Source of the DNA: Hyalangium minutum
GTDB taxonomy: Bacteria; Myxococcota; Myxococcia; Myxococcales; Myxococcaceae
NCBI RefSeq assembly: GCF_000737315.1
Contig: NZ_JMCB01000024.1
Coordinates: 62,001-126,000, forward strand
DNA length: 64,000 nucleotides
Direction: 5' to 3'
In this document: positions 47,205-60,010 of the stretch, one piece after another
Layout of the letters: every line of letters starts with the position of its first letter
Position numbering within the stretch: position 1 is the stretch's first letter
Notes under the pieces: generated by a model
Database searches by the model: none
The model's input: only the letters and a program-made list of their open reading frames with translations
What the model was told of the DNA's origin: nothing
Position numbers and translations under genes: made by a program

Positions 47205-48595
47205 CAGGAGTGATCCCTCCAGTCGCGCTCCTCACGCTGCTCACTGGCCTTGCGCGCCGCGGCCTGAGTCGCAGCTTGCGCCGCGGCCTGGGCCGCCGCC
47301 GCTTCCTGTGCGCTGTCGAGGTCCAGCAGCTTGCTCACCCCGTACGCCGCCAGCCCACCGATGGCGGCTCCGCCCGCGGCGATCGCCGCCACCTCGGCCA
47401 GGGAGCGCTGCGGAGCGAAGTCCCAAGCCGGGACATTCCGAGTGCCCGGATACGCATTGTGGCGATGGGTATACGGATCGAACCCACCCAGCTCGCTCCA
47501 GTGGACCATCCGTCCATTGCCCTCGACGCGCACCTTGACTGGGGGCGGCTGGCCCGCGGCGGCCATGTTCGCGCACGGCGGGCACGCCAGCACGGAGGTA
47601 ACGGTCTCGCCTCGCTTGAGCGGCACCTGCATCCGGAAGGAGGCATTCGCCAGGGGGCGAGCACAGAAGTAGCAGCCCACGCGCTCGCCCTCGGGGGCAA
47701 AGGCCCTGTCTCCAAAGAGCGTCCGGGCCCGCTCCTCCGCGGCCTTCGCGCCCTCTTCGGCCGCGCGGATGGGGACCTCCGCCGCCTCGGGGGTCACCTT
47801 TCCCACGCGGGCCTTCGCGAGCTCATCACGCGCTCGCTGCTCCGCCATCGTGGCCTGGTTGAGCAGCGCGCGCAGGTCGGCGTCCTCCTCCAGGCGCAGG
47901 GCATGCTCCACCGAGGTCAACGCGCTCGCCACCTGTTCCATCCGCTGATCCAGGGGCGACACGTCCACACTGCGCATCGGTGTCTTGGCAGACGTCTTCC
48001 CGGGGGCACGGCGCTGTGGGGGAGCGTCCTCACCCCGAGCCTTCGCCCTCCGGATGAGGAAGCGAATCAAGAAGATGAGGCCACCGACGAACAGGAGCGG
48101 GCCGGCGAAGCAGATGACTCCGGCGATGACGGTGGCCGCCGTGTCGTTCGGCTCAGACTCAGGAGAGGCCGGGCTTGGCGCTGAGGTGCTCCCGTCCGTC
48201 GCTGCCGGAGAGGGATCGGACTGGGAGAACCCCATCTCGCGCAGTTTGTCGTCGATCTCCGCCTTCTTGTACTCCGGGTCCAGCGTCAGCGACTGGAGCA
48301 GGGCCTCGCGTGCCTCGGGGAAGCGGTTCAGCTTCCGCAGGGTGAGCCCACGGTTGTACTGCCACCGGGCCTTGCCGGGCTCCAGGGCAGCGGCCTGGTC
48401 GAACTTCTCCAGGGCGCCCGCATAGTCCTTCGCGTCGTAGAGGCGCTTGCCCTGCTCGTACACCGCGAGCGCCTGCGTGCTGCGCTCCGAGTCCGTTGCG
48501 ACCGAGCCCTCACCCCCCGCTGGCGCCTGGGCCAGCACCACGGGCCCCAGCAACACCCCCAACCCGAGCACCAGTACAGGAACATTCCATCGCAT
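47204..48595 (-). CDS. Signal peptide + TPR + TM protein with cytoplasmic CxxC..CxxC zinc-ribbon-like domain
   Basis: N-terminal signal, TPR-like repeats (YEQG..LYDAKDY..A / YNRG), one TM helix, CYFC...CPPC, Ala-rich tail; stop overlaps the GT start (TGATG). Confidence 0.7.
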   Translation of the reverse strand: MRWNVPVLVLGLGVLLGPVVLAQAPAGGEGSVATDSERSTQALAVYEQGKRLYDAKDYAGALEKFDQAAALEPGKARWQYNRGLTLRKLNRFPEAREALLQSLTLDPEYKKAEIDDKLREMGFSQSDPSPAATDGSTSAPSPASPESEPNDTAATVIAGVICFAGPLLFVGGLIFLIRFLIRRAKARGEDAPPQRRAPGKTSAKTPMRSVDVSPLDQRMEQVASALTSVEHALRLEEDADLRALLNQATMAEQRARDELAKARVGKVTPEAAEVPIRAAEEGAKAAEERARTLFGDRAFAPEGERVGCYFCARPLANASFRMQVPLKRGETVTSVLACPPCANMAAAGQPPPVKVRVEGNGRMVHWSELGGFDPYTHRHNAYPGTRNVPAWDFAPQRSLAEVAAIAAGGAAIGGLAAYGVSKLLDLDSAQEAAAAQAAAQAATQAAARKASEQREERDWRDHS

Positions 48596-48669
48596 CACGT
48601 ACCCACTCCTCCGTCGCACGCTCCCGAGTTAACGCCAGGAGCCGAGGGAGGAGCAATGCACGTCTCTGC

Positions 48670-50300: not shown

Positions 50301-50665
50301 TTACGGATGGTTAGCGGCTTCCTCCATCCGTATTGCACGTATGTCGCATGCGGGCGCAAGCGGCAGGGGCCGGTCAAGAACACTGACCGCCTCTCGCCGC
50401 GTGTCGGGGCTCAGATGGGCGTAGCGCTCGGTCATCTCGATCGTGACGTGGCCCATCAGTTCCTGGTTCTCCCTGACGAAGCCCCGTCTTGAGCGCCACC
50501 AGAAGCAATGTCCGCCATTCCGGCTCGGCTGCATCGATCAACCGCTCGGCTTCCTCGAAGGTGAGGAAATCGAAGGTGGGTTTGGGCAGCTTCCCGAAGA
50601 GTCGCACGCGGGGAGCCTGCGGGATGACCCGCTGTTCCTCCGCAAGCGCCAGCAGCTTGCTCCAG
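50301..50665 (-). pseudogene. Tyrosine recombinase/integrase remnant with internal deletion
   Basis: KLLALAEE.RVIP.AP...FDFLTFEEAERLIDAA..WRTLLLVALKTGLRQGE is fused out of frame to QELMGHVTIEMTERYAHL; the HxxR box is missing and the N-terminus is lost. Confidence 0.85.
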
Positions 50666-50754
50666 GCGGATGGCGCCAGCTCGGTCCCGGTGGCGCGCGG
50701 CGGATGGCGCCAGCTCGGTTCGGGTGGCGCCCACGGCGGACAGCTCCAGCTCGG
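50665..50754. repeat. Three imperfect direct repeats GGCGGA(TG/CA)GC(G/T)CCAGCTCGG
   Basis: Units start at 50665, 50699 and 50735 (34/36-nt periods). Confidence 0.6.
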
Positions 50755-50766
50755 CCCAGACCTCCT

Positions 50767-51525
50767 TCAGCCTGGAGTGACGCGCCCGCCGATCTCCGGG
50801 AAGCGCTCGTAGGTCCGCAAGAGCGCTTCTAGATGGGCGGGGTTGTCAAGATCGAGCGGTGCATCCGTGAGCTGCACCACCCACCCGCCCGACGCCGTGC
50901 GCCGCGCTCGCGTGAGCAGCTCGGCGTCGCGGGCCGGGTCCGGGAACCCGATCACTTGCGCGGCAGCGGCGGACCAGAAGTTCAGCCAACCAAGGGAATA
51001 GGGAATCTCTGGCGAGCGGATGTGGTCGAAGAGCTTCAGGGCGGGCAACCCCCGGCGTGGGGATGGCGGTCCTTCCAGCGTGGGTGCTGTCTGATACGCG
51101 ATGTCCAGCGCAGCGGCATCCGGCGTGGCATGCCCCCAGAACGCGCGTGCGCCCTCCGCTACGCCCTCCAGCATCTCCGCCGCTGCCGCGATAACGGCCT
51201 CGTCTAGTGGCAACTTCGCATGAACGTGGAGTTGCGGCTGACCGCCCGGGCTGAGGATTGCTGGGCTCTGTCTCCCCGCAACCGTCACAGGGTAGCTCTC
51301 GTCGCCATTGCACAGGAGCGGGAGCTTTCCGCGTCTTGTCGCCTCAACGAGCCAAGCGTCGCGTTGCGGTAACTCGATGGGGCGCCCTCCTTCGCCCACT
51401 TCCCACTTCAGGCGCAAGCCGGGCAGCGCCCGTTCCATACCACTGACGACAGCAAGTGTGCGGCCGTCATTGGCCACGAGCGCTGGCGCGTAGACGGCCA
51501 GAATGAGGCGATTTCGAGTGGTCAT
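50767..51525 (-). CDS. Putative immunity protein (myxobacterial DUF5953-like)
   Basis: ATGA-coupled to the upstream toxin; LGWLNFWS..AA..IGFPDP.RD.ELL..RTASGGWVVQLTD.PLDLDNPAH..ALL..YERFPEIGGR resembles immunity families paired with REase toxins. Confidence 0.7.
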   Translation of the reverse strand: MTTRNRLILAVYAPALVANDGRTLAVVSGMERALPGLRLKWEVGEGGRPIELPQRDAWLVEATRRGKLPLLCNGDESYPVTVAGRQSPAILSPGGQPQLHVHAKLPLDEAVIAAAAEMLEGVAEGARAFWGHATPDAAALDIAYQTAPTLEGPPSPRRGLPALKLFDHIRSPEIPYSLGWLNFWSAAAAQVIGFPDPARDAELLTRARRTASGGWVVQLTDAPLDLDNPAHLEALLRTYERFPEIGGRVTPG

Positions 51526-52250
51526 CGTTTGCATCCCGTGACGACGATCTTGAGGGAGGGAAGGACCTTGAGCAGCGCGTCTTTGTGCTCTTGGGTGCTC
51601 ACCCCAACAACGAAGTCGTATCCACAGGCCCGCGCAGCGGCAAGTTCCTCGGTCAGTTGCGCCACCTCCTTCTCAATCTCCTGCTCCTGGATAAAGTCAG
51701 GGTAGGTGTCAAATCGGTGGGTCTTGATCTCCCACAGCACACGCACGCCGACTTGCAGCGCATCGAAGCGCTCACCGCCCACGAATACGTCCATGCCGGG
51801 ATAACGGTTGGGCGGAAACTTATCGGCGCACTCGTTATGCGGGACATCCCCGCCCGCGTGCGGCACCAGGATGGGCTGGCACTCCGGGCGGCGCTCCAGC
51901 GTCACTGGGGGAGGCGGGGCGCTCCTGTTCGCTCGGGGCCCCTCCGGTGCGGGGTTCGCCTCCGGATCCTGCGAGGCCCGAGGAGCGTCTCCGGCCCAAA
52001 GGCCCGGCTCCCGGGTGGGCGGCAAGACGCGCTTGTGCGGGCTCCGAGGTAGGGGCTGGGGGCGAACCTGCCCTGGCTGCCCGGGGGTGGGGAGGCCCGT
52101 GCCGGGCACAGCGGGTGGGCGTACGGGCGCCCAAGCGTAGGTCTCAGGCGCCTCTTGAGTCTCAGGCGCCTTTTGAGAAGTGGCGCACCCAGCGACGACT
52201 CCGGCAGCGGCAACGGCTTGGAGGAGTGCGCTGCACGTTCGGAAGTTCAT
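51522..52250 (-). CDS. Lipoprotein polymorphic toxin with C-terminal PD-(D/E)xK-like nuclease domain (DUF6310-like)
   Basis: AAAGGA RBS; lipobox VAGC; Pro-rich linker; FDALQVGVRVLWEIKTH; immediately followed by the immunity-like gene. Confidence 0.72.
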   Translation of the reverse strand: MNFRTCSALLQAVAAAGVVAGCATSQKAPETQEAPETYAWAPVRPPAVPGTGLPTPGQPGQVRPQPLPRSPHKRVLPPTREPGLWAGDAPRASQDPEANPAPEGPRANRSAPPPPVTLERRPECQPILVPHAGGDVPHNECADKFPPNRYPGMDVFVGGERFDALQVGVRVLWEIKTHRFDTYPDFIQEQEIEKEVAQLTEELAAARACGYDFVVGVSTQEHKDALLKVLPSLKIVVTGCKR

Positions 52251-52328
52251 TCCACGTCCTTTCACCGAAGAGAGGGCGGTGCGGGTCAAGGCTGGGCCAC
52301 TTCCCCTCGGGAGTCTGCCAGCATGCGC

Positions 52329-52374
52329 TGACAGCTTGAGCCGGGGGCGCGCGCGTCTGACAGCTCCAGCTCGG
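52329..52374. repeat. Two CTGACAGCT repeats; the second contains GACAGCTCCAGCTCGG, identical to 50739-50754
   Basis: Exact 16-nt direct repeat seen on both sides of the toxin/immunity pair. Confidence 0.55.
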
Positions 52375-52458
52375 GCCGGGGCACGGTGCAGGGCATGTGA
52401 TCTGAAGGGGCGCAGGCGGTGTCCACCACGGTCGCTGGCAGCGTGGAGCGCGGTCACT

Positions 52459-52509
52459 TGACGCGTCAGCCCTTCCGGTTGACACGTCAGCCCTTCGGTC
52501 GACGTGTCA
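52459..52509. promoter_or_regulatory. Second triple TGAC-N2-GTCA array (21/20-nt spacing)
   Basis: TGACGCGTCA 52459, TGACACGTCA 52480, CGACGTGTCA 52500; linkers GCCCTT(C)CGGT repeated. Confidence 0.55.
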
Positions 52510-52589
52510 AAGCGCGTGCTTCGCATGGCCCGGTGCAGGCGGCGCTCACTCCACGCCGCCTGCGTCCGTCAGACAGGGCCTACGGTGGC

Positions 52590-53810
52590 TTAATCACACA
52601 GCCACGGACGGGTGTCGCAGATGGGCGGTTCACACTGCGTAGGGTCCATGTCGCAAGGATCCGGCGGGGTGTCGCCGTACTCTCCCCTCACGGTGATGAA
52701 GACCTGCGGCGTGTAGTCGCCGAACCACTCGACGTTCTCCCGGAGCATTCGCCACTGGAAGGCGATGGTGCTCGTGTAGTCCAGGTTGGGCGCAACGGCC
52801 GTGAACTGGAACGTCTTGGTGCCGCCTGGCGCGATCAGATCGTAGAGGTCGAGCCCCACACGCCCGCCGGCACCCCAGCTGTTGTTGTCCTGAGGTGACT
52901 GCGAGCCGAGCCGATACTCCCGATCCGACGTCCACGCGGCAGCGCCGCTGTTGCGCAGGGTGATGGACACCGTGAACGGCTGCCCGGCCTGGACTTCCGT
53001 GGGAACCGACTGGCTCACGAAGGTCGCCGCATTGGTGGGCTGGATGTTCGAGTAGAACCAGTCGTGGAAGTAGCCCCCCGGGAGCTGGGTGCAGGACGGC
53101 GGCAGGGTCTGCCCCGCCACATAGGAGCATTCGATGGAGATGCCCGCGATGCAGCCCGGAAGGGACTGGAGCGGGCACTGCCAGTCAAAGACGCCACGCC
53201 AGATGCTGGCGCCCCCCGAGTCGCCCTCCGCCAGTTGCTTCCCCGACGTGGGCCGCACCAGCAGGTAATGGGGGGCGTCCGCGTAGCCGTCGACCTTCAG
53301 CTCCGCATAGCGCAGCGTTCCGGCCCCCGTGCCATCCGGGGTGTTGTATCCATACCCGAACACCTGCAGGACATAGTCATCCAGCGACACCGCCGTGCCG
53401 CTGTAGACCGGCCGCAAGAACGAGTGGTCCGAGCTGAAGAGGGTGAAAGGCTCGGTCAACAGGATGATGGCCAGATCCTCGGTGGGGTGGAGGATGAACC
53501 TCCGAGGGCGGCGGGTCTCCGAGCCCATCTTGAGGCTGACCGTGTGCGGGTAGGTCAGGTCGTAGTTCGTGAGGCAGTGCTTCGCCGTGATGAGCCAATG
53601 GTTGGTGTGCAGCGTGGCCGTGCACTTTCCGTGGCTCGTCTGGAGCAGCGCGAAGCCTGAGTCCGCCGAATTCATATCGGTCCCATTGACGACGGCATCG
53701 CTCCGCTGCCCCAGGGCTGGCTGCGACTCCTGGGACTCCGAGGGGTTCTCTTCGCCGCAAGCCATGACGAGGCATGACAGCAGCAACAAGGACAGATGGA
53801 CCCGGTGCAT
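52590..53810 (-). CDS. Trypsin-like serine protease lipoprotein with C-terminal NBR1-type Ig-like domain
   Basis: Lipobox VMAC; TAKHC, DLAI, GDSGG triad; F.SQSVP...GQ.F.V..T.RN.G...W...Y.LG..FQW.M domain; Cys/Pro tail. Confidence 0.85.
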   Translation of the reverse strand: MHRVHLSLLLLSCLVMACGEENPSESQESQPALGQRSDAVVNGTDMNSADSGFALLQTSHGKCTATLHTNHWLITAKHCLTNYDLTYPHTVSLKMGSETRRPRRFILHPTEDLAIILLTEPFTLFSSDHSFLRPVYSGTAVSLDDYVLQVFGYGYNTPDGTGAGTLRYAELKVDGYADAPHYLLVRPTSGKQLAEGDSGGASIWRGVFDWQCPLQSLPGCIAGISIECSYVAGQTLPPSCTQLPGGYFHDWFYSNIQPTNAATFVSQSVPTEVQAGQPFTVSITLRNSGAAAWTSDREYRLGSQSPQDNNSWGAGGRVGLDLYDLIAPGGTKTFQFTAVAPNLDYTSTIAFQWRMLRENVEWFGDYTPQVFITVRGEYGDTPPDPCDMDPTQCEPPICDTRPWLCD

Positions 53811-53839
53811 GTTCTTTCCTGTGCGGTTCGGGTGGCTCA

Positions 53840-55129
53840 TCACTGGGTCACGATCCACACGTCGTGGACGCTCAAGAGATCTTTGATATCGGGGTACACG
53901 ATGCGGTAGCTGCAATCCGTCCGAGCCGAATCCGTGCAGGAGGCAGGGGCACCGCCCGGGTCTCCAGCGCTGATGGTCCCCTTCGCGACGACCATTCCCG
54001 CCGTGGAGGAGAGCGAGAAGACGGGGCCGCCGCTGTCGCCTGGACCGGCGGCGAACTCATGGGACTGCTCCTCGGCCTCGACCATGGGGCCATACCGGTA
54101 GGTGGTGATGTCGTTCCAGTAGATGCCGACGTTGGTCACCATGATGTTGCAGCGGGCGCCAGAGAAGGAGCCCGAGGTGCACACCCAGTTTCCCACGTAG
54201 TTCCTGCTGGCGCCGGCGACCCCCTTGGTGAACTCACCCACCCCGACGCCGCCATCGTAGATATCGCCAGACGCGGCGACAGCAATCCGGACGGTGTCAT
54301 AGGGCTTGTTGTATGCCGTCGTGGACCCCATGACGTTGCCGACCCCCGTGTAGAAGGTGACGCCGTTGCCATGGGCGCAATGCCCCGCCGTGAGCATTCC
54401 CTGGCCGAAGAGGTTGCCCACCGCGAAGCCCGAGGAGCAGGAGACGGTGGAGTTCTTGATGCGAGCGCCTCCGAAATAGGGCGCCCAGTCGTCCAGGCGC
54501 GAGAAGTGGGCGAGAGGCCTGCCTTGCTCGAGCTTCAGATGGACCTTCTGATTGAAGATCGCCATCCGTGAGGCCTCCTCCACCGGCCCACTGATGCTCA
54601 CGGACAGGCCCGACCAGCCCGGAAGAGGAGCCACCTTGTACACCTGAACCCCCGGCGCGACGCCAGGCGCGAGAGCTTCATCGAAGATACGCTCCGCCTC
54701 GGCCCGCAGCTCGGCCTTCGAGTACGCGGCCTCGGCCTGCGCGATCTGGATGCCTTCCCGCGAGGTGAGCTGCTCCACGAGGTGGGCCACCTCGAGCGGA
54801 AGCTTCTGGCCAGCCTTCCAGTACAGCGTGACGAGCCGCTGGGGCACGTCGAGGGTGATTCCCGAGAACCCGCTCAGCCCACGAGCCTCGATGAGCTCGC
54901 TCAGCGCGTCCGCAGCCCGGGTCAGGGGTTCCTGCGCCGCCGCCAGCTCCGCCCACGAGGAGAAACCCCGCGGGGGAGAACTTTGCGGTTCCTGACTCGT
55001 CGCGCGAGGGACCCTGCTGTCCGCGGCTTCCGCCGCCGCACTCAGGATCATGGCTGCACAGGTCATGCTCGAGAGCAGCGCCGACACGAGCCGCGCTCGG
55101 GCGCCGCCGATGACACTCTGCTTCATCAT
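53840..55129 (-). CDS. Secreted S1 (alpha-lytic/streptogrisin-like) serine protease with pro-region
   Basis: Signal and pro-region; CSSGF, LTAGHC, YDTV, VCTSGSFSG, GPGDSGGPVF. Confidence 0.85.
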   Translation of the reverse strand: MMKQSVIGGARARLVSALLSSMTCAAMILSAAAEAADSRVPRATSQEPQSSPPRGFSSWAELAAAQEPLTRAADALSELIEARGLSGFSGITLDVPQRLVTLYWKAGQKLPLEVAHLVEQLTSREGIQIAQAEAAYSKAELRAEAERIFDEALAPGVAPGVQVYKVAPLPGWSGLSVSISGPVEEASRMAIFNQKVHLKLEQGRPLAHFSRLDDWAPYFGGARIKNSTVSCSSGFAVGNLFGQGMLTAGHCAHGNGVTFYTGVGNVMGSTTAYNKPYDTVRIAVAASGDIYDGGVGVGEFTKGVAGASRNYVGNWVCTSGSFSGARCNIMVTNVGIYWNDITTYRYGPMVEAEEQSHEFAAGPGDSGGPVFSLSSTAGMVVAKGTISAGDPGGAPASCTDSARTDCSYRIVYPDIKDLLSVHDVWIVTQ

Positions 55130-55437
55130 TTTCTTCTTTCTCCTGCGGTGATCGTTCAAGGGTTGGATCTGCCTGGATGCACGCACCCAGCTGTGCAGCG
55201 AAGCTTGGTTGCTGCACGTGCCGGGGCGCAGAGCACCCGCCGTGCCAAGACCCGGAGCCTGGGGTGATGTCACCGAGATGCCTGGGGAGCGCTGGGAACG
55301 CAGCACAGGCCAGGAATCGTGCAGCAGGGTTGTGCGCGGAAGGGTTCCGCCGCAGATTCCGGCAACGGGGGCTGCGTGGAGAGACTACTCAGCTGCGTGT
55401 TCGCGACACGCTGGGCTGGAAGGCAGCCGCCCCAACC

Positions 55438-56763
55438 TCAGGAACGCCGCCCGAGGAACTGTGGATCGCTCCAGTCCCACAGCCGCTCGGGGTGGAAGTC
55501 CAGGTCCACCGGGGTGCTGTTCCACTGGTACACCTTGCGCGAGCTGGCACCGTGGATGTGGATGGCCAGGCTCACCAGCGCCAGCACCGCGAAGGTGGCC
55601 GTGAGCGGACGCCGCGCCCGCTCTCCGCTCCAACCCAGCTCGCGCACCACCGGCACCAGGAAGAAGAAGAGGTAGGGCACCATGTCCGTGAAGAAGCGCG
55701 GCCCATACGAGTGCCCTGCCCACCAGTGCGGAAAGGAGGAGATGGCCAGCCAGTGGAGGACGAAGGCCCCCAGCAGGAAGCCGTGCAGCCGCGTGAAGGT
55801 GCCCGCCCGGCGCTCCAGCACCAGCCCCCAGAAGCTCAGCAGCACCAGCGGCGTGAACACCAACAGCCCACGGGCCGGCGAGACGAGGTTGCCCGCGAGC
55901 GCCTCGGCGAAGAGCGCCAGGTTCGTCTCCAGCCGCTGCGAGTCGTAGTACGGCGCCAGCACCGAGCCGTAGTGGGCCAGGTTCAGCGCGCACCATGGCA
56001 CCGCCACCACCAGGGCCCCCGTGCAGAACTTCACCGCCTGCCGCGGGTGCGTCCACAGCACGTACACGGACAGCAGCAGCACGGATACCCCGTTGGTGGG
56101 CCGCATGACGTACGACAGCGCGAGCGGCAGCCCCGCCCACCCCGCATAGCGCGGCTCCGCCCGCGCCTTCACCAGGCACAGCAGCACCCACGACAGGCAC
56201 AGCATGGAGGGCCCGTGCTGCCACAGGGCTCGGCTCGCCGTGGACAGCGCCGGTGTGCAGAAGACAAAGGCTGTGGAGAGCAGCAGCGCCCGGGGACGCG
56301 ACAGCGTCTGTCTCCCCAGCGCGTACATCACCACCCCCGCCAGCGCTACCATCACCGAGGCGAACAAGCGCTGCGGATCATTCCAGTCCTCCAGCGGCAG
56401 CGCTCCCGTGGCGTCGTAGAGGGCCCGCCAGCGCGCCACCGGACGAGAGAAGGAAGGATGTACGTGGCCCAGGGGCTCGGCCAGGCGCGCGGCCCCGTCC
56501 GTGAGCGCTACCAGCGGTAGCGCCGCCAGCGAGGGCCCCAAGGGGAAGAAGTTGTAGAGGTGCCCCTCCCGCTCGTAGAGCCCGTGGCGGTACGTCTCGA
56601 AGGTGGGCGCGTACTCGTCCAGGTTGATGTTCCCCTCGCGCAGCAGGGAGACCGTGGTCGGCAGCGTCAGCTTCGAATCGAACGGCGTGTTGACGGGGAA
56701 GAGCGCCAGCAGCGTCAAGTAGACCGCGAACAGCAGCGCCCGCTCCCGGAGGATTGGCAGCAT
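55438..56763 (-). CDS. Polytopic membrane GT-C-type glycosyltransferase
   Basis: About 10 TM; first-loop Asp (PFDSK), TASRALWQH, YVMRPTN, GNLVSPARGL..FTP, WWAGHSYGPRF. Confidence 0.7.
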   Translation of the reverse strand: MLPILRERALLFAVYLTLLALFPVNTPFDSKLTLPTTVSLLREGNINLDEYAPTFETYRHGLYEREGHLYNFFPLGPSLAALPLVALTDGAARLAEPLGHVHPSFSRPVARWRALYDATGALPLEDWNDPQRLFASVMVALAGVVMYALGRQTLSRPRALLLSTAFVFCTPALSTASRALWQHGPSMLCLSWVLLCLVKARAEPRYAGWAGLPLALSYVMRPTNGVSVLLLSVYVLWTHPRQAVKFCTGALVVAVPWCALNLAHYGSVLAPYYDSQRLETNLALFAEALAGNLVSPARGLLVFTPLVLLSFWGLVLERRAGTFTRLHGFLLGAFVLHWLAISSFPHWWAGHSYGPRFFTDMVPYLFFFLVPVVRELGWSGERARRPLTATFAVLALVSLAIHIHGASSRKVYQWNSTPVDLDFHPERLWDWSDPQFLGRRS

Positions 56764-56828
56764 GGCGGAGCCACATTATCCCGCCCGCCATGTTCCAGAA
56801 GAAGTTCATCCCGAGTACCGTGGCGCGG

Positions 56829-57827
56829 ATGGAATCACAGCGCCTCGCGCCGGAGCAGCAGGCCTGGTTGGCTGAAAACCTCACGCGAGGCGTCCCTCCG
56901 GCGCTCCTGACGGAGCGTCTGGTTCAGGAGGGCGTGGAGTCCGCCACGGCACGGGCGGCGGTAGAGGCCACCCGTCATCACCCAGCGGTGGTGGCGGCCA
57001 CGCGTGTCACCCAGCGGCAGGGCGAGCTGCGCGCATTGTTCGAGACGTACGCCGCGCTGCACCGCCAGTCCGGGTGGAACCAGCGCCTGGAGCGCCGGGC
57101 GGACCTCTCCGCGAGCGAGTTCTTCGAGCGCTACTACTACGCACACCGGCCCGTCATCCTCCAGGGACGGATGAAGGACTGGCCCGCCATGGACAGCTGG
57201 CGTCCCGAGCGCTTAGCCGAGCGTTTTGGGGACATTCCGGTGGAGGTGATGGCCGGCCGGGAGAGCGATCCGAGCCACGACATCGCCCCTGAGCGCTTTC
57301 GCTCGGTGATGCCCCTGCGAGACTTCATTCAGCGGCTGCTGAGCGGCGGTCCCACCAATGATCTCTACCTCACCGCGCGCAACTTCGCCCTGGAGCGGCC
57401 GGAGCTGCGCGTCATGTTCGAGGATCTGCGCCCGCTCGAAGGGCTCTTGCGCCCAGTCCGCGACCGGACCGTGAAGCTCTGGGTGGGCCCCGCGGGGACC
57501 CTCACCTCTCTGCATCACGATCTGTCCAACGTCCTGTTCGCCCAGGTTCACGGGCGGAAGCACTTCAAGCTCATCCCGTCCTTCGAGCTCCACTGTCTCT
57601 ACAATCACCACGGCGTCTGGAGCGAGGTGGACGCCACACGCCCCGACTTCGAGCGGTTCCCCGCCTACCGCGATGTGGATCTGGTGGAGGCCGTGCTCGA
57701 ACCGGGAGAGCTGCTCTTCATCCCGGTGGGCTGGTGGCACTGGGTCCACGCTCTCGACGTGAGCGTGTCGGTGTCGTTCCAGACGTTCGAGGTTCCGGGC
57801 GGTAACACGCCCTGGCGGCTGTTGTGA
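56829..57827 (+). CDS. JmjC/cupin_8 Fe(II)/2OG hydroxylase, paralogue 1
   Basis: YY..RPVIL, WPAM..W, LWVGPAGT.TSLHHD (HxD), KHFKL, PVGWWHWV (His). Start is 56829 or 56790. Confidence 0.88.
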   Translation: MESQRLAPEQQAWLAENLTRGVPPALLTERLVQEGVESATARAAVEATRHHPAVVAATRVTQRQGELRALFETYAALHRQSGWNQRLERRADLSASEFFERYYYAHRPVILQGRMKDWPAMDSWRPERLAERFGDIPVEVMAGRESDPSHDIAPERFRSVMPLRDFIQRLLSGGPTNDLYLTARNFALERPELRVMFEDLRPLEGLLRPVRDRTVKLWVGPAGTLTSLHHDLSNVLFAQVHGRKHFKLIPSFELHCLYNHHGVWSEVDATRPDFERFPAYRDVDLVEAVLEPGELLFIPVGWWHWVHALDVSVSVSFQTFEVPGGNTPWRLL

Positions 57828-57834
57828 GCGTCCC

Positions 57835-58002
57835 TCAGCGCGCGAGCGGCGGCTTGGAGGGCGGAGCGGTCGGCTTGCGCTGGGTGCGCTCGAACGTCTC
57901 CTCGCCGGGGTTCGGCGAAGGATTCGGGACGATGAACGGATTCGGGACGATCATCCAGTTGTTCCGGCCCTGCTTCGACGACGCATCACCGTTGCTCGAC
58001 AT
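57835..58002 (-). CDS. 55-aa peptide with tandem IVPNP/SPNP repeats (candidate precursor/substrate peptide)
   Basis: GAGGA RBS; strongly GC3-biased codons; fills the gap between JmjC genes; 14-nt direct repeat at 18-nt period (57920-57951). Confidence 0.65.
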   Translation of the reverse strand: MSSNGDASSKQGRNNWMIVPNPFIVPNPSPNPGEETFERTQRKPTAPPSKPPLAR

Positions 58003-58049
58003 GAAGTCCTCGCTTCGAAAGCCGCTCCTCCTCATATCATATCCGCGCC

Positions 58050-59090
58050 ATGCCGGTGCGTGAGTGGATCGCCGAGAACCTCGCCCTGGGCGTCCCCCGG
58101 GAGGCGTTGCTCTCCTCGCTGGTCCAGGGGGGCTTGGCGCCTGAGGTAGCGCGCGCGGAGTTGGAAGCCGCCGCGGCCCACCCCGCGGTGCGCGGGGCCT
58201 CGCGTCACCTCGCGCGCCGGGCGCACCTGAGAGCCCTCCTGGACACCTACAGCGCGCTCTACCGGCAGTCCCAAGCGGGACAGGGTGTCGAGCGCCGAGC
58301 CCAGCTCGCCCCCGCCGAGTTCTTCGAGCGCTACTACTTCCAGAATCGGCCCGTGGTCATCGAAGGACTGCTCGAGGACTGGCCAGCGCTGCGGCGCTGG
58401 TCGCCCGGGTTCTTCGCGGACCGCTTCGGAGACGCGCAGGTCGAGGTGATGGCCGGGCGGGATGCGGAGGCCCAGCCGGATCTCCACGTCTCCCGCCTGA
58501 GGACCTCCCTGTCGATGCGCGAGTACGCCGCGCGGATCGAAGCCACCCAAGAGTCGAACGACATCTACATGGTGGCGCGTAACAGCCTGCTGAAGCGCGA
58601 GGCGTTCCAGCCCTTGCTGGAGGACATCCGAGCGCCGAAGGGCTTCATCCGTCCCGACATCCACGTCCCCGACAGCGTCCACCTGTGGTTCGGCCCGGCG
58701 GGAACCTGGGCCGCCCTGCATCACGACCACCTCAACGTGCTCTTCTGCCAGGTGCTCGGACGCAAGCGCTTCCGGCTCATCCCCTCCTTCGAGTTGCCTC
58801 GCGCCTACAACCACCAGGGGCTGTACAGCGCCGTGGATCCCCGGACGCCGGATCCCGCACGCTTCCCCGAGTTCCAGCACGCCACGGTGCTGGACTTCGT
58901 GGTGGGCCCGGGCGATGCGCTGTTGATTCCCGTGGGGTGGTGGCATGCCGTGCACGCCCTGGATGTGAGCATCTCCGTGACGTTCGTGAGCTTTGATTTG
59001 CCCGAGCGGAACACGTACTGGCGCAACTGCTGGATCGGCCCGGACCCGGACAGCGAGGGCGCGGCCATGAGAAAGGTGGAGACTCCATGA
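58050..59090 (+). CDS. JmjC/cupin_8 Fe(II)/2OG hydroxylase, paralogue 2
   Basis: LWFGPAGTWAALHHD, KRFRL, PVGWWHAV; shares the N-terminal W.xENL..G helical domain. Confidence 0.88.
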   Translation: MPVREWIAENLALGVPREALLSSLVQGGLAPEVARAELEAAAAHPAVRGASRHLARRAHLRALLDTYSALYRQSQAGQGVERRAQLAPAEFFERYYFQNRPVVIEGLLEDWPALRRWSPGFFADRFGDAQVEVMAGRDAEAQPDLHVSRLRTSLSMREYAARIEATQESNDIYMVARNSLLKREAFQPLLEDIRAPKGFIRPDIHVPDSVHLWFGPAGTWAALHHDHLNVLFCQVLGRKRFRLIPSFELPRAYNHQGLYSAVDPRTPDPARFPEFQHATVLDFVVGPGDALLIPVGWWHAVHALDVSISVTFVSFDLPERNTYWRNCWIGPDPDSEGAAMRKVETP

Positions 59091-60010
59091 CCCAGGACTC
59101 GGGCAAAGACCCTTCCGCGCTCTCCGCCGAGTGGAGGGAGTGGCTCGTCGAGAACCTGCTGCTCGGGGTGGAGGCGGAGGAGCTGGTGGAGGTGTTGGTG
59201 AAGGGCGGGGTGGACGCGGAGCTGGCTCGCTCGGCCCTGCTGGCCGAGACGCAGGATCCTCACTTCCAGGGCGTCGTGCGGGTGGCCCAGATGCAGCGGA
59301 AGATGGAGACGCTCCTGGACGTCTACGCGGAGTTCTTCCGGCAGGCGGGCGCGCACCAGCAGGTGGACCGCCACGTGGCACTGCCCGCAGAGGCTTTCTT
59401 CGAGCGCTACTACTTTCGCAACCGGCCGGTGGTGATCCAGGGCGCGCTCACGGAGTGGACGGCACGGGGCGGGTGGACACTGGCCCGCATCACCGAGCAG
59501 CTCGGCCCGGTGGCTCGCCCGGGAGAGCCCCTCTCCGTGTCCTTGCTGGAGCGCGCGGAATGGAAGCCGCTGCTGGAGGAGCTCCACCCTCCTCGCGGAT
59601 ACGCCGCCGAGGACCTTCAGGCCAGCGCTCCGCGGCTCTGGCTCGAGCCCGCTGGGGCAGAGCTCCCCTTGGGCCCGCTGCGGAAGAACCTGCTGCGCTG
59701 TCAGCTCTCGGGAAGGAGTGTCCTGCAGCTCGTCCCCTCGTTCGAGCTCCATCGCATCACACGGGAAGAGGCGGGGGGCAGCACCGAGCAGGAGGGAGCC
59801 GCGCCTCCCACCCCCGCGCTGCGACTGACGGTGGAACTGGCGGCGGGCGAGTTGCTGCTACTCCCCGTGGGGTGGTGGTACCGCCTCCATGCGCCGGAGG
59901 ACAGCCTCGCGGTGACCTTCGAGGGGTTCGCTCTCCGTGAACCCAACACCGTCTGGAAGGAGCCTGCCTCGGAGACAGCGCCCTCGGGCCCTCCACCGAG
60001 AGTGCGCTAA
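59087..60010 (+). CDS. Degenerate JmjC paralogue 3 lacking metal ligands
   Basis: Same N-terminal domain and RYYFRNRPVV, but LPLGP replaces LHHD and PVGWWYRL replaces PVGWWH; ATGA-coupled to paralogue 2. Confidence 0.75.
   Translation: MTQDSGKDPSALSAEWREWLVENLLLGVEAEELVEVLVKGGVDAELARSALLAETQDPHFQGVVRVAQMQRKMETLLDVYAEFFRQAGAHQQVDRHVALPAEAFFERYYFRNRPVVIQGALTEWTARGGWTLARITEQLGPVARPGEPLSVSLLERAEWKPLLEELHPPRGYAAEDLQASAPRLWLEPAGAELPLGPLRKNLLRCQLSGRSVLQLVPSFELHRITREEAGGSTEQEGAAPPTPALRLTVELAAGELLLLPVGWWYRLHAPEDSLAVTFEGFALREPNTVWKEPASETAPSGPPPRVR

Follow-up and report, generated by a model that had tools for sequence, protein, structure and literature searches.

A conserved module of JmjC oxygenases and a small proline-rich peptide, their candidate substrate, in Hyalangium minutum

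Three paralogous genes for JmjC-type oxygenases stand in a row and, in the gap between the first two, there is an open reading frame (ORF) for a short proline-rich peptide: do these genes belong together, and is the peptide what the oxygenases act on? We ask this of a locus of Hyalangium minutum (contig NZ_JMCB01000024.1) that lies within an analysed stretch of 64,000 nucleotides, called the window below, with a G+C content of ~68%. The oxygenase genes are named J1, J2 and J3 and the peptide gene pepA. A reading made from the letters of the DNA (the sequence-only reading) had described the cluster as a candidate new peptide-modification system. The account that we favour, with moderate confidence, is that the four genes form a module in which pepA is the dedicated substrate of the JmjC oxygenases. 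Classified by its sequences, the module would pair a JmjC hydroxylase that modifies peptides with a ribosomal substrate of its own: a known kind of enzyme in a new form. The enzyme-substrate relation, the hydroxylation chemistry and its site, and the roles given below to J3, to the tail of the peptide and to the N-terminal domain of the enzymes are what we infer from the comparisons described here.

JmjC enzymes that hydroxylate proteins and peptides have a central place in how eukaryotes sense oxygen and control translation, and we know of almost no bacterial JmjC enzyme with a known substrate. With a candidate substrate encoded beside the enzyme and a short invariant core in that peptide, activity, site and chemistry could be read by co-expression and mass spectrometry.

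The module and its peptide gene

All three JmjC/Cupin_8 paralogues named by the sequence-only reading are present, at 56829-60010, each with a Cupin_8 match (Table 1). The start of J1 is set at the ATG at 56829 because the J1 orthologues are 332-335 residues long; a TTG at 56754 is an artefact of the ORF caller. The start of J3 overlaps the stop of J2 by 4 nt. The peptide gene stands between paralogues 1 and 2 as had been proposed, and it bears a coding signature, but it lies on the strand opposite to the J genes, with its stop 7 nt from that of J1 and its start 47 nt from that of J2. Its start is the ATG at 58002, and an in-frame ATG further upstream (58035) would give a peptide of 66 residues. 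What had been taken for a PNP repeat is a unit IVPNP that occurs twice and is followed by SPNP, the conserved core being IVPNP.

Does this arrangement recur in other genomes? The comparison set holds 80 loci encoding relatives of J1, plus several reached through individual proteins; the motif and GT-C scans cover 84 sequences. A minus-strand ORF of the pepA type occupies a J1-J2 gap of 180-260 nt wherever J1 and J2 are adjacent, and pepA is found in all 11 loci that have J1, J2 and J3 (the window, L001, L002, L003, L084, L004-L008 and L089). The ten besides the window include Cystobacter, Hyalangium, Corallococcus (L004, L006-L008), Citreicoccus (L005) and Myxococcus (L089); the possibility that homologous JmjC clusters lack a similar peptide is not borne out in these ten further loci from five named genera, where gap and strand are the same. 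By best-hit assignment, the order of the J1, J2 and J3 orthologues does not change between the window, L001, L002, L084 and L004-L008, and L089 has the same layout. J1 is 86% identical to the H. versicolor protein, and pepA is 84% identical to the peptide of C. ferrugineus; with Hyalangium and Cystobacter as its nearest relatives, we place the window in Archangiaceae. In a neighbour-joining tree the proteins separate cleanly into four clades, which are those of J1, J2 and J3 plus a sister clade, JB. The J1, J2 and J3 clades each repeat one deep split, between window-like and Corallococcus-like loci, two groups that we take to be Archangiaceae and Myxococcaceae (these family names for groups of loci are our own placement). 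The triplication is therefore older than the split, and the module appears to be a vertically inherited four-gene unit.

Is the pepA ORF a gene? Several independent lines of sequence comparison argue that it is. Among the window, L002, C. ferrugineus (L001) and H. versicolor (L084) the peptides are 82-93% identical. The substitutions at codon positions 1, 2 and 3 number 5, 2 and 15 between L001 and L084 (14 synonymous, 4 non-synonymous) and 6, 3 and 18 between L002 and L084 (15 synonymous, 9 non-synonymous). The position-3 bias among these four orthologues is limited to the pepA frame, the other five frames having 0-6 synonymous changes between L001 and L084, and the G+C content of third codon positions, counted from the sequence, is ~89% in pepA. 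Between genera, insertions and deletions keep the frame, and the motifs IVPNP and P.PPP..PPL persist. The 2.0 million six-frame residues of the 84 sequences contain IVPNP 11 times, 10 of these in the pepA ORF or its positional equivalents. A peptide profile built from Corallococcus and Citreicoccus alone scores the 55-residue window peptide at E 1.8e-4 among 2290 ORFs, and the window ORF escapes the Corallococcus-only profile if a 173-residue stop-to-stop segment is searched instead. Annotation pipelines call pepA as a gene in Cystobacter, Hyalangium and Myxococcus. The comparison of two Corallococcus species is not clearly coding (6, 10 and 9 substitutions by codon position; 7 synonymous, 15 non-synonymous). 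No Rfam RNA family is found in the window, and a tRNA scan of the region gives nothing relevant.

Two parts of the peptide are held constant. I18, V19, P20 and N21 are invariant in nine peptides, and so is a tail pattern, P-T-x-P-P-x-x-P-P. Window-like (Archangiaceae-type) loci and Myxococcus L089 have two IVPNP units, Corallococcus has one; the peptide of C. coralloides reads MTPPENSYRIVPNPNPPCDP...RKRTPAAPPPTPPPSTPPLPE and that of a Myxococcus sp. MTSPTDPLPKIVPNPPPNPPTRRERIVPNPATHP...RPTPPPTTPPLKK. Inspection of the sequence finds no export signal or signal peptide in pepA; it is cytoplasmic and, we infer, disordered. No Pfam or NCBIfam family matches it. A direct sequence search with pepA returns only two close relatives, profiles and positional inspection being needed for the rest, and tblastn of the peptides against the 84 sequences yields, beyond close relatives, only noise.

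The sister clade JB, with one active JmjC per locus, has a peptide of its own, which we call pepB. It adjoins JB in 19 of 19 JB loci inspected (12 in Myxococcaceae/Minicystis, L001, and 6 in Micromonosporaceae). It occurs in Myxococcus, Corallococcus, Archangium, Cystobacter and Minicystis and, among Micromonosporaceae, in Micromonospora, Catellatospora, Dactylosporangium and Allocatelliglobosispora; in the latter family pepB overlaps the JmjC start by 4 nt and the other surrounding genes are unrelated. In C. ferrugineus the pepA triad and the pepB-JB pair lie side by side. The pepB core is HVKNSYVNC, within the consensus ..[DE]H[IF]PAHVK[NGS][SNT]Y[VP][NDT]C......R.P.PPP..PPL, and its V, K, Y and C are invariant. 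Two to three internal core repeats are present in Micromonospora and Allocatelliglobosispora. In Minicystis rosea (L015, 6628-7908) six tandem pepB genes stand directly upstream of a single JmjC gene, and the copies differ in the residues after the conserved Cys. In Allocatelliglobosispora scoriae (L086, 7245-8266) the JmjC gene beside a pepB with two repeats is broken up into ORFs of 225 and 115 residues (a frameshift or sequencing error), and a second pepB, of 50 residues, is located past an intervening two-component system.

How widespread are these peptides, and are the two kinds related? They are 47-77 residues long. A word-indexed profile search of 5.8 billion proteins gives ~70 peptide clusters, with no Pfam domain in any; the named ones are all called 'hypothetical protein', except for one UniRef label, 'Lipoprotein'. 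An exhaustive HMMER scan of 1.84 billion representatives gives only 25 at E <= 0.001. The peptide family appears from these searches to be real but narrow. The Corallococcus and Citreicoccus pepA peptides are not among the matches of the 5.8-billion-protein search; gene callers overlook part of the pepA family. Homology of pepA and pepB was considered and rejected, since a hidden Markov model built from pepB alone does not recover pepA, and hhalign of the two profiles aligns only the C-terminal ~20 columns, which are of low complexity (probability 59%, E 9.4e-5). A combined pepA and pepB profile is circular with respect to pepA. We read the peptides as probably two families, with two core types and a common, low-complexity tail module.

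The claim that peptide and JmjC genes make up a functional unit finds support in the conservation of pepA across the module loci and in a sister JmjC clade that has its own peptide in two phyla. Since each peptide family tracks its own JmjC clade over two phyla and nothing else is constant, an enzyme-substrate pair is the simplest account.

Table 1. Coordinates of the module and its immediate neighbours in the window
Feature	Position	Strand	Remarks
GT-C membrane protein, PMT_2-type	55438-56763	-	PMT_2 E 7.8e-8; 33.1 bits, above the gathering cutoff (26.1)
J1, JMJD5/FIH-like Fe(II)/2OG oxygenase (predicted), 332 aa	56829-57827	+	Cupin_8 E 3.7e-44
J1 N-terminal four-helix domain	56829-57086	+	JmjC/Cupin_8 domain follows
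pepA, 55-aa proline-rich peptide, candidate substrate, MSSNGDASSKQGRNNWMIVPNPFIVPNPSPNPGEETFERTQRKPTAPPSKPPLAR	57835-58002	-	Stop codon included
pepA core, residues 18-32, IVPNP-F-IVPNP-SPNP	57907-57951	-	Contains the family-invariant IVPN
pepA C-terminal tail, residues 42-53, RKPTAPPSKPPL	57844-57879	-	Basic, Pro-rich
J2, second JmjC paralogue, 346 aa	58050-59090	+	Cupin_8 E 1.8e-41; same N-terminal domain
J3, JmjC paralogue predicted to be catalytically dead, 307 aa	59087-60010	+	Cupin_8 E 9.5e-11, partial match
Pkinase + AAA_16 (STAND-type) kinase	60146 to beyond window end	+	Begins 136 nt past J3

The oxygenases and a proposed mechanism

Are the enzymes able to act? In alignments, the HHD (LHHD), GRK and WWH motifs of J1 are unbroken in 9 of 9 orthologues and the catalytic motifs of J2 in 10 of 10, and the HxD...H iron triad and the Lys that binds 2-oxoglutarate (2OG) are retained in J1, J2 and JB. 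J1 and J2 are predicted to be competent Fe(II)/2OG oxygenases of the JMJD5/FIH clade. The AlphaFold2 (AF2) model of J1 has a predicted local distance difference test score (pLDDT) of 93.8, and its top 21 Foldseek matches are all JMJD5, followed by JMJD7, TYW5, FIH and JMJD6. The best of them, JMJD5 6f4t, has E 1.4e-22, a template modelling (TM) score of 0.86 normalised to the target and 32% identity. With phmmer, J1 matches human JMJD5 at E 4.8e-34 (residues 94-317) and FIH at E 4.6e-17 (residues 217-330 only; TM ~0.5). Human JMJD5 is the nearest solved relative of J1, much nearer than FIH, and matches it along the entire JmjC domain. No NCBIfam model exists for J1, J2, J3 or pepA.

JMJD5 (KDM8; PDB 6F4P) is a protein arginyl C-3 hydroxylase that acts on peptide and protein substrates, and the JMJD5 entries in the Foldseek match list contain peptide-substrate complexes. 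It shares with J1 the HxD...H triad, the 2OG Lys, GRK and WxGP; the bacterial proteins, in contrast, have another N-terminal domain, a candidate substrate encoded next door and a dead paralogue in the set. FIH, an asparaginyl, aspartyl and histidinyl hydroxylase of the same JmjC clade, takes Asn in disordered peptides as a target; in pepA one Asn is invariant. FIH dimerises via C-terminal helices, which are absent from J1-type proteins. Carrying substrate specificity over from JMJD5 (Arg) or from FIH (Asn) was considered and rejected for lack of support. The residues that set J1, J2 and JB apart are TARNF, VARNS and VPRNE, respectively, plus a K/H/S position preceding the W-x-G-P motif. These clade-specific positions align with Q275 and N308 of JMJD5, the residues through which entries 6f4q, 6f4r and 6f4s have substrate peptides cross-linked (Q275 to RPS6 in 6f4q). 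Such residues at substrate-contact positions fit the idea that J1, J2 and JB are each tuned to their own peptide.

The third paralogue is of another kind, and the claim of three working JmjC enzymes finds no support here. In 10 of 10 J3 orthologues HxD is replaced by LGPL or LRPL, GRK by GRS, GRC or GER, and WWH by WWY, with the one exception that L016 retains the distal His; two segments, VEVMAGRE and TNDxYxxARN, are deleted in all ten. The loss of the iron ligands and of the 2OG-binding Lys argues for a conserved pseudo-enzyme and against a third hydroxylase: J3 is predicted to be catalytically dead, a member of the family by descent only. It keeps WREWLVENL..G of the N-terminal domain.

That domain, an extra helical region with a W(L/I)xENLxxG motif said to be common to all three proteins, is confirmed. 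W..W[LI].EN[LY]..G is present at the N-terminus of J1, J2 and J3, and AF2 gives residues 8-81 of J1 as three short helices and one long one (pLDDT 92-94). The domain has no Pfam match and no significant PDB fold match by Foldseek (best E 2.6). We considered and rejected it as a recognition element (RRE) of the kind used for peptides that are made by ribosomes and modified post-translationally (RiPPs), as there is no fold match: it is all-helical, and the lasso B1 RRE 6jx3 appears in Foldseek only at E 3.7 over 45 columns. Many RiPP classes have no RRE, and its absence is not disqualifying. In the sequence-only reading it is the N-terminal domain that would recognise the substrate.

How might the module work? 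In the mechanism that we propose, J1 and J2 would hydroxylate side chains of pepA, with +16 Da for each event, in or beside the IVPNP core, and core residues 18-32 are the most likely site of modification. Candidate positions are Asn21 (and Asn27), the side chains of Ile, Val or Pro, or the preceding aromatic residue; Asn remains a candidate target, given that Asn21 of IVPNP is invariant. J3 would have a non-catalytic part, as partner or scaffold bound to the peptide or to the active paralogues. The C-terminal tail of pepA, RKPTAPPSKPPL, may be the docking element; it is the best candidate for this because it is the only part that pepA has in common with the peptides of the sister clade, and the support, for a segment of low complexity, is moderate. 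A much more speculative reading is that the invariant Lys, Tyr and Cys of pepB are oxidatively cross-linked, which would give a new peptide-derived macrocycle or a quinone-type cofactor.

Several observations weigh against pepA being a dedicated substrate. The gene is antisense to the J genes with almost no space for a promoter of its own, and a promoter and terminator scan at pepA yielded nothing usable. The N-terminal domain is present also in cyanobacterial, acidobacterial and other members of the family where the peptide profiles matched nothing, and it is therefore not specific to the pepA and pepB peptides. These peptides are not detectably homologous to each other outside the tail, so that the parallel between them rests on position, not on sequence. 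Of the residues that we take to form the Arg-binding pocket of JMJD5 (E238, Y243, W248, S318 and W310), E238, Y243 and W248 stand opposite M, E and R in J1 by the HMMER alignment, where the alignment of the loop is uncertain; S318, which is Thr in J1, and W310, which is Trp, are the only pocket positions kept. This mismatch lowers the likelihood of Arg as the J1 target, and the target residue is therefore not transferable from JMJD5. Finally, neither the window module nor the cores of the Cystobacter/Hyalangium type and of Micromonosporaceae encode a protease or exporter, an unusual trait if the product were a released RiPP.

Among the marks of a RiPP locus we find a short precursor gene beside the modifying enzyme, kept across taxa (pepA in 11 of 11 loci, pepB in 19 of 19), and multiple precursor copies or repeated cores (six copies in Minicystis; repeats in Micromonospora and Allocatelliglobosispora; IVPNP doubled in the window and in L089); no leader protease or exporter is found in the cluster. 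JmjC hydroxylases do act on ribosomal precursor peptides, as with BipG, the ornithine hydroxylase of biphenomycin (PMC12707348), and CzlI, the Phe hydroxylase of curacozole (PMC11575548), both of JmjC type and each with its precursor encoded in the same cluster. Both are accessory enzymes in large clusters with MNIO, radical SAM, YcaO, protease and transporter genes, whereas here the JmjC proteins are the sole enzymes of the conserved core, the peptide families are new and there is no conserved RRE, protease or exporter. The survey of Iyer et al. (2010), in the parts of it that were available, lists myxobacterial FIH/JMJD5-like JmjC proteins such as MXAN_4411 and proposes peptide modification for bacterial JmjC members (PMC2938197). 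The contexts given in those parts are nonribosomal peptide synthetase, ATP-grasp ligase, halogenase and siderophore clusters, and they mention no ribosomal small-peptide partner and no ECF/anti-sigma or CHAT-TPR link (PMC2938197). We find no account of the peptides, the N-terminal domain or the module in Pfam, in NCBIfam or in the searchable literature, which does not cover most subscription journals. If the proposal is true, it would establish two families of precursor peptides and an N-terminal domain, all of them new, and give a clear case of a conserved pseudo-oxygenase partner; the module would then be either a minimal RiPP class with JmjC as its class-defining enzyme or a hydroxylation-dependent circuit tied, in myxobacteria, to ECF sigma/anti-sigma factors and CHAT proteases.

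Competing explanations

What would the modified peptide be for? Our best reading of the peptide-JmjC pairs is that they are RiPP-like or signalling, and the modified peptide might serve inside the cell as a signal or regulator, or be released as a natural product. The lack of a conserved protease or exporter, the cytoplasmic peptide and the links to TPR regulators in Myxococcaceae favour intracellular signalling; the presence of tandem copies and of repeats in the core points to a natural-product precursor. A signalling switch proper, in which the peptide is no natural-product precursor but a small intracellular signal, hydroxylated in dependence on O2, Fe and 2OG to a state that the TPR domains of regulators read, is in our judgement possible and rather improbable. 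It has the enzyme-substrate step in common with the account in which pepA is a dedicated substrate and differs from it only in the end function; the readers would be an anti-sigma factor, a CHAT protease or, in the window, perhaps the adjacent STAND kinase.

The neighbourhoods of other loci speak for such a switch. In 11 of 11 Myxococcaceae pepB loci, pepB is followed on the same strand by a sigma factor of the extracytoplasmic function (ECF) type and a zf-HC2/TPR anti-sigma factor. A CHAT-TPR (caspase-like) protein of 915-1006 residues is encoded convergently with the last JmjC gene in 17 of 17 Myxococcaceae loci (L004-L014, L016-L021), of both the pepA and the pepB type, and its N-terminal TPR part is ~40% identical to the TPR part of the anti-sigma factor (e.g., L010, 5573-11798). 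Regulators are located near other loci as well, namely an ECF sigma factor (H. versicolor), a LuxR-type regulator (C. ferrugineus), two-component systems (Catellatospora, Allocatelliglobosispora) and the Pkinase + AAA_16 gene right after J3 in the window, and a peptide without an export signal in a core without transporter or protease fits the same picture. However, regulators commonly adjoin any gene cluster, and the neighbours vary between families and phyla. The CHAT-TPR link is found in Myxococcaceae only; CHAT-TPR and ECF/anti-sigma genes do not adjoin the Cystobacter/Hyalangium modules or the actinobacterial pairs, where the constant content is peptide plus JmjC, and no TPR, CHAT or ECF gene stands beside the window module. 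Tandem copies and internal core repeats are, moreover, more typical of natural-product precursors. By analogy, and just as tentatively as the switch itself, the pairs may be seen as a bacterial counterpart of eukaryotic FIH/PHD oxygen sensing, with a dedicated peptide, two active paralogues and a dead one, paralogous TPR readers and other regulators in other lineages.

Could the peptide be something other than a substrate? It might be a translational leader or stalling ORF, or an inhibitor or chaperone of the oxygenases, with cellular proteins as the true substrates (compare JMJD5-RPS6 and YcfD-L16). The PPP and PPS stretches of the peptide are classic ribosome-stalling motifs, the peptide ORF of Micromonosporaceae overlaps the JmjC start as regulatory upstream ORFs do, and several sources label J1-type enzymes 'ribosomal protein L16 Arg81 hydroxylase', a name given by automatic annotation. 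On the other side, pepA is on the strand opposite to all three J genes and is therefore no cis leader, the motifs outside the proline stretches, IVPNP and HVKNSYVNC, are conserved as amino acids from genus to genus and from phylum to phylum and recur inside individual peptides, and each peptide family follows its own JmjC clade. We consider a peptide that is not a substrate unlikely.

Less likely still is an ORF that is no gene, a by-product of high G+C in a J1-J2 spacer made of regulatory DNA or RNA. Long spurious ORFs are frequent at ~68% G+C and the two-Corallococcus substitution pattern would suit this view, but the four orthologues have their position-3 bias and synonymous excess in the pepA frame only, the motifs and the frame survive insertions and deletions, Rfam has no match and independent pipelines call the gene.

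The full model of the sequence-only reading, in which three JmjC enzymes hydroxylate Asn/Pro iteratively and the GT-C protein then glycosylates the new hydroxyls, can hardly be right: it has in its favour the divergent GT-C gene next to J1, the invariant Asn21 of IVPNP and, in the wider family, a JmjC-prolyl-4-hydroxylase fusion near a Skp1-type GlcNAc transferase (described below), whereas J3 cannot be catalytic, the GT-C gene is missing from all orthologous modules outside the window and L002, and GT-C enzymes act on the membrane's outer face, away from a peptide that has no signal peptide.

Neighbouring genes and the remainder of the window

The divergent arrangement of the GT-C gene and J1, with less than 70 nt between the starts, holds (65 nt from ATG to ATG). 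A part for the GT-C protein in the system, as the enzyme that glycosylates the hydroxyls, does not. Among the 84 sequences phmmer finds the gene in the window and L002 only. L002 is ~95% identical to the window at the nucleotide level, and it has a 1.6-kb insertion (L002, 3755-5350) exactly between GT-C and J1 (window junction ~56813/56814), which encodes a 513-residue membrane protein without a Pfam match. The gene is absent from the modules of L001, L084, L004-L008 and L089. In its position H. versicolor has a catalase gene, C. ferrugineus the second JmjC-peptide pair, Corallococcus an aspartyl-tRNA synthetase plus an OprB porin, and Myxococcus small genes that are unrelated. The match of the protein to the NCBIfam LA_3751/3752 family is weak and below its cutoff. 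With a linkage that is not conserved and a pepA that has no signal peptide, the glycosylation step is not supported, and we judge GT-C to be probably an accidental neighbour outside the system.

On the other side of the module, the STAND-type kinase gene reaches no stop codon within the window, for which reason the ORF list omits it.

In L085 (3135-7563), one branch of the JmjC family carries a fused prolyl-4-hydroxylase domain (2OG-FeII_Oxy_3 + Cupin_8, 520 residues) and lies two genes downstream of a PF11397 GlcNAc transferase. PF11397 is, we presume, the family of the Skp1 hydroxyproline GlcNAc transferase, and the pairing hints at hydroxylation followed by glycosylation elsewhere in the JmjC family.

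The minus strand of the window holds further blocks of interest. At 45079-48619 a Radical SAM/SPASM protein (45079-46269), a GT28/UDPGT-like glycosyltransferase (46116-47204) and a TPR protein (47204-48619) are encoded in a row; this block may be a second, unrelated peptide-modification cluster. At least its abhydrolase and TPR end is syntenic in L002, a sequence that stops inside the TPR gene. At 40985-44043 a LodA-like L-lysine epsilon-oxidase (LodA_N, LodA_C) is encoded beside a LodB-like flavoprotein (Trp_halogenase/FAD_binding_3), and at 36730-40954 tandem PixA inclusion-body genes (36730-37257 and 37291-37818) stand beside a gene for a 1029-residue protein without a Pfam match. An M49 peptidase is encoded at 34474-36648.

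Between GT-C and a ureidoglycolate lyase gene, the window has a variable island (50301-55306) with an integrase remnant (weak Phage_integrase matches in two frames), DUF5953, DUF6310 and two trypsin-like S1 proteases. The same slot in L002 is taken by an Ntox15 toxin and a Tdi1-like immunity gene.

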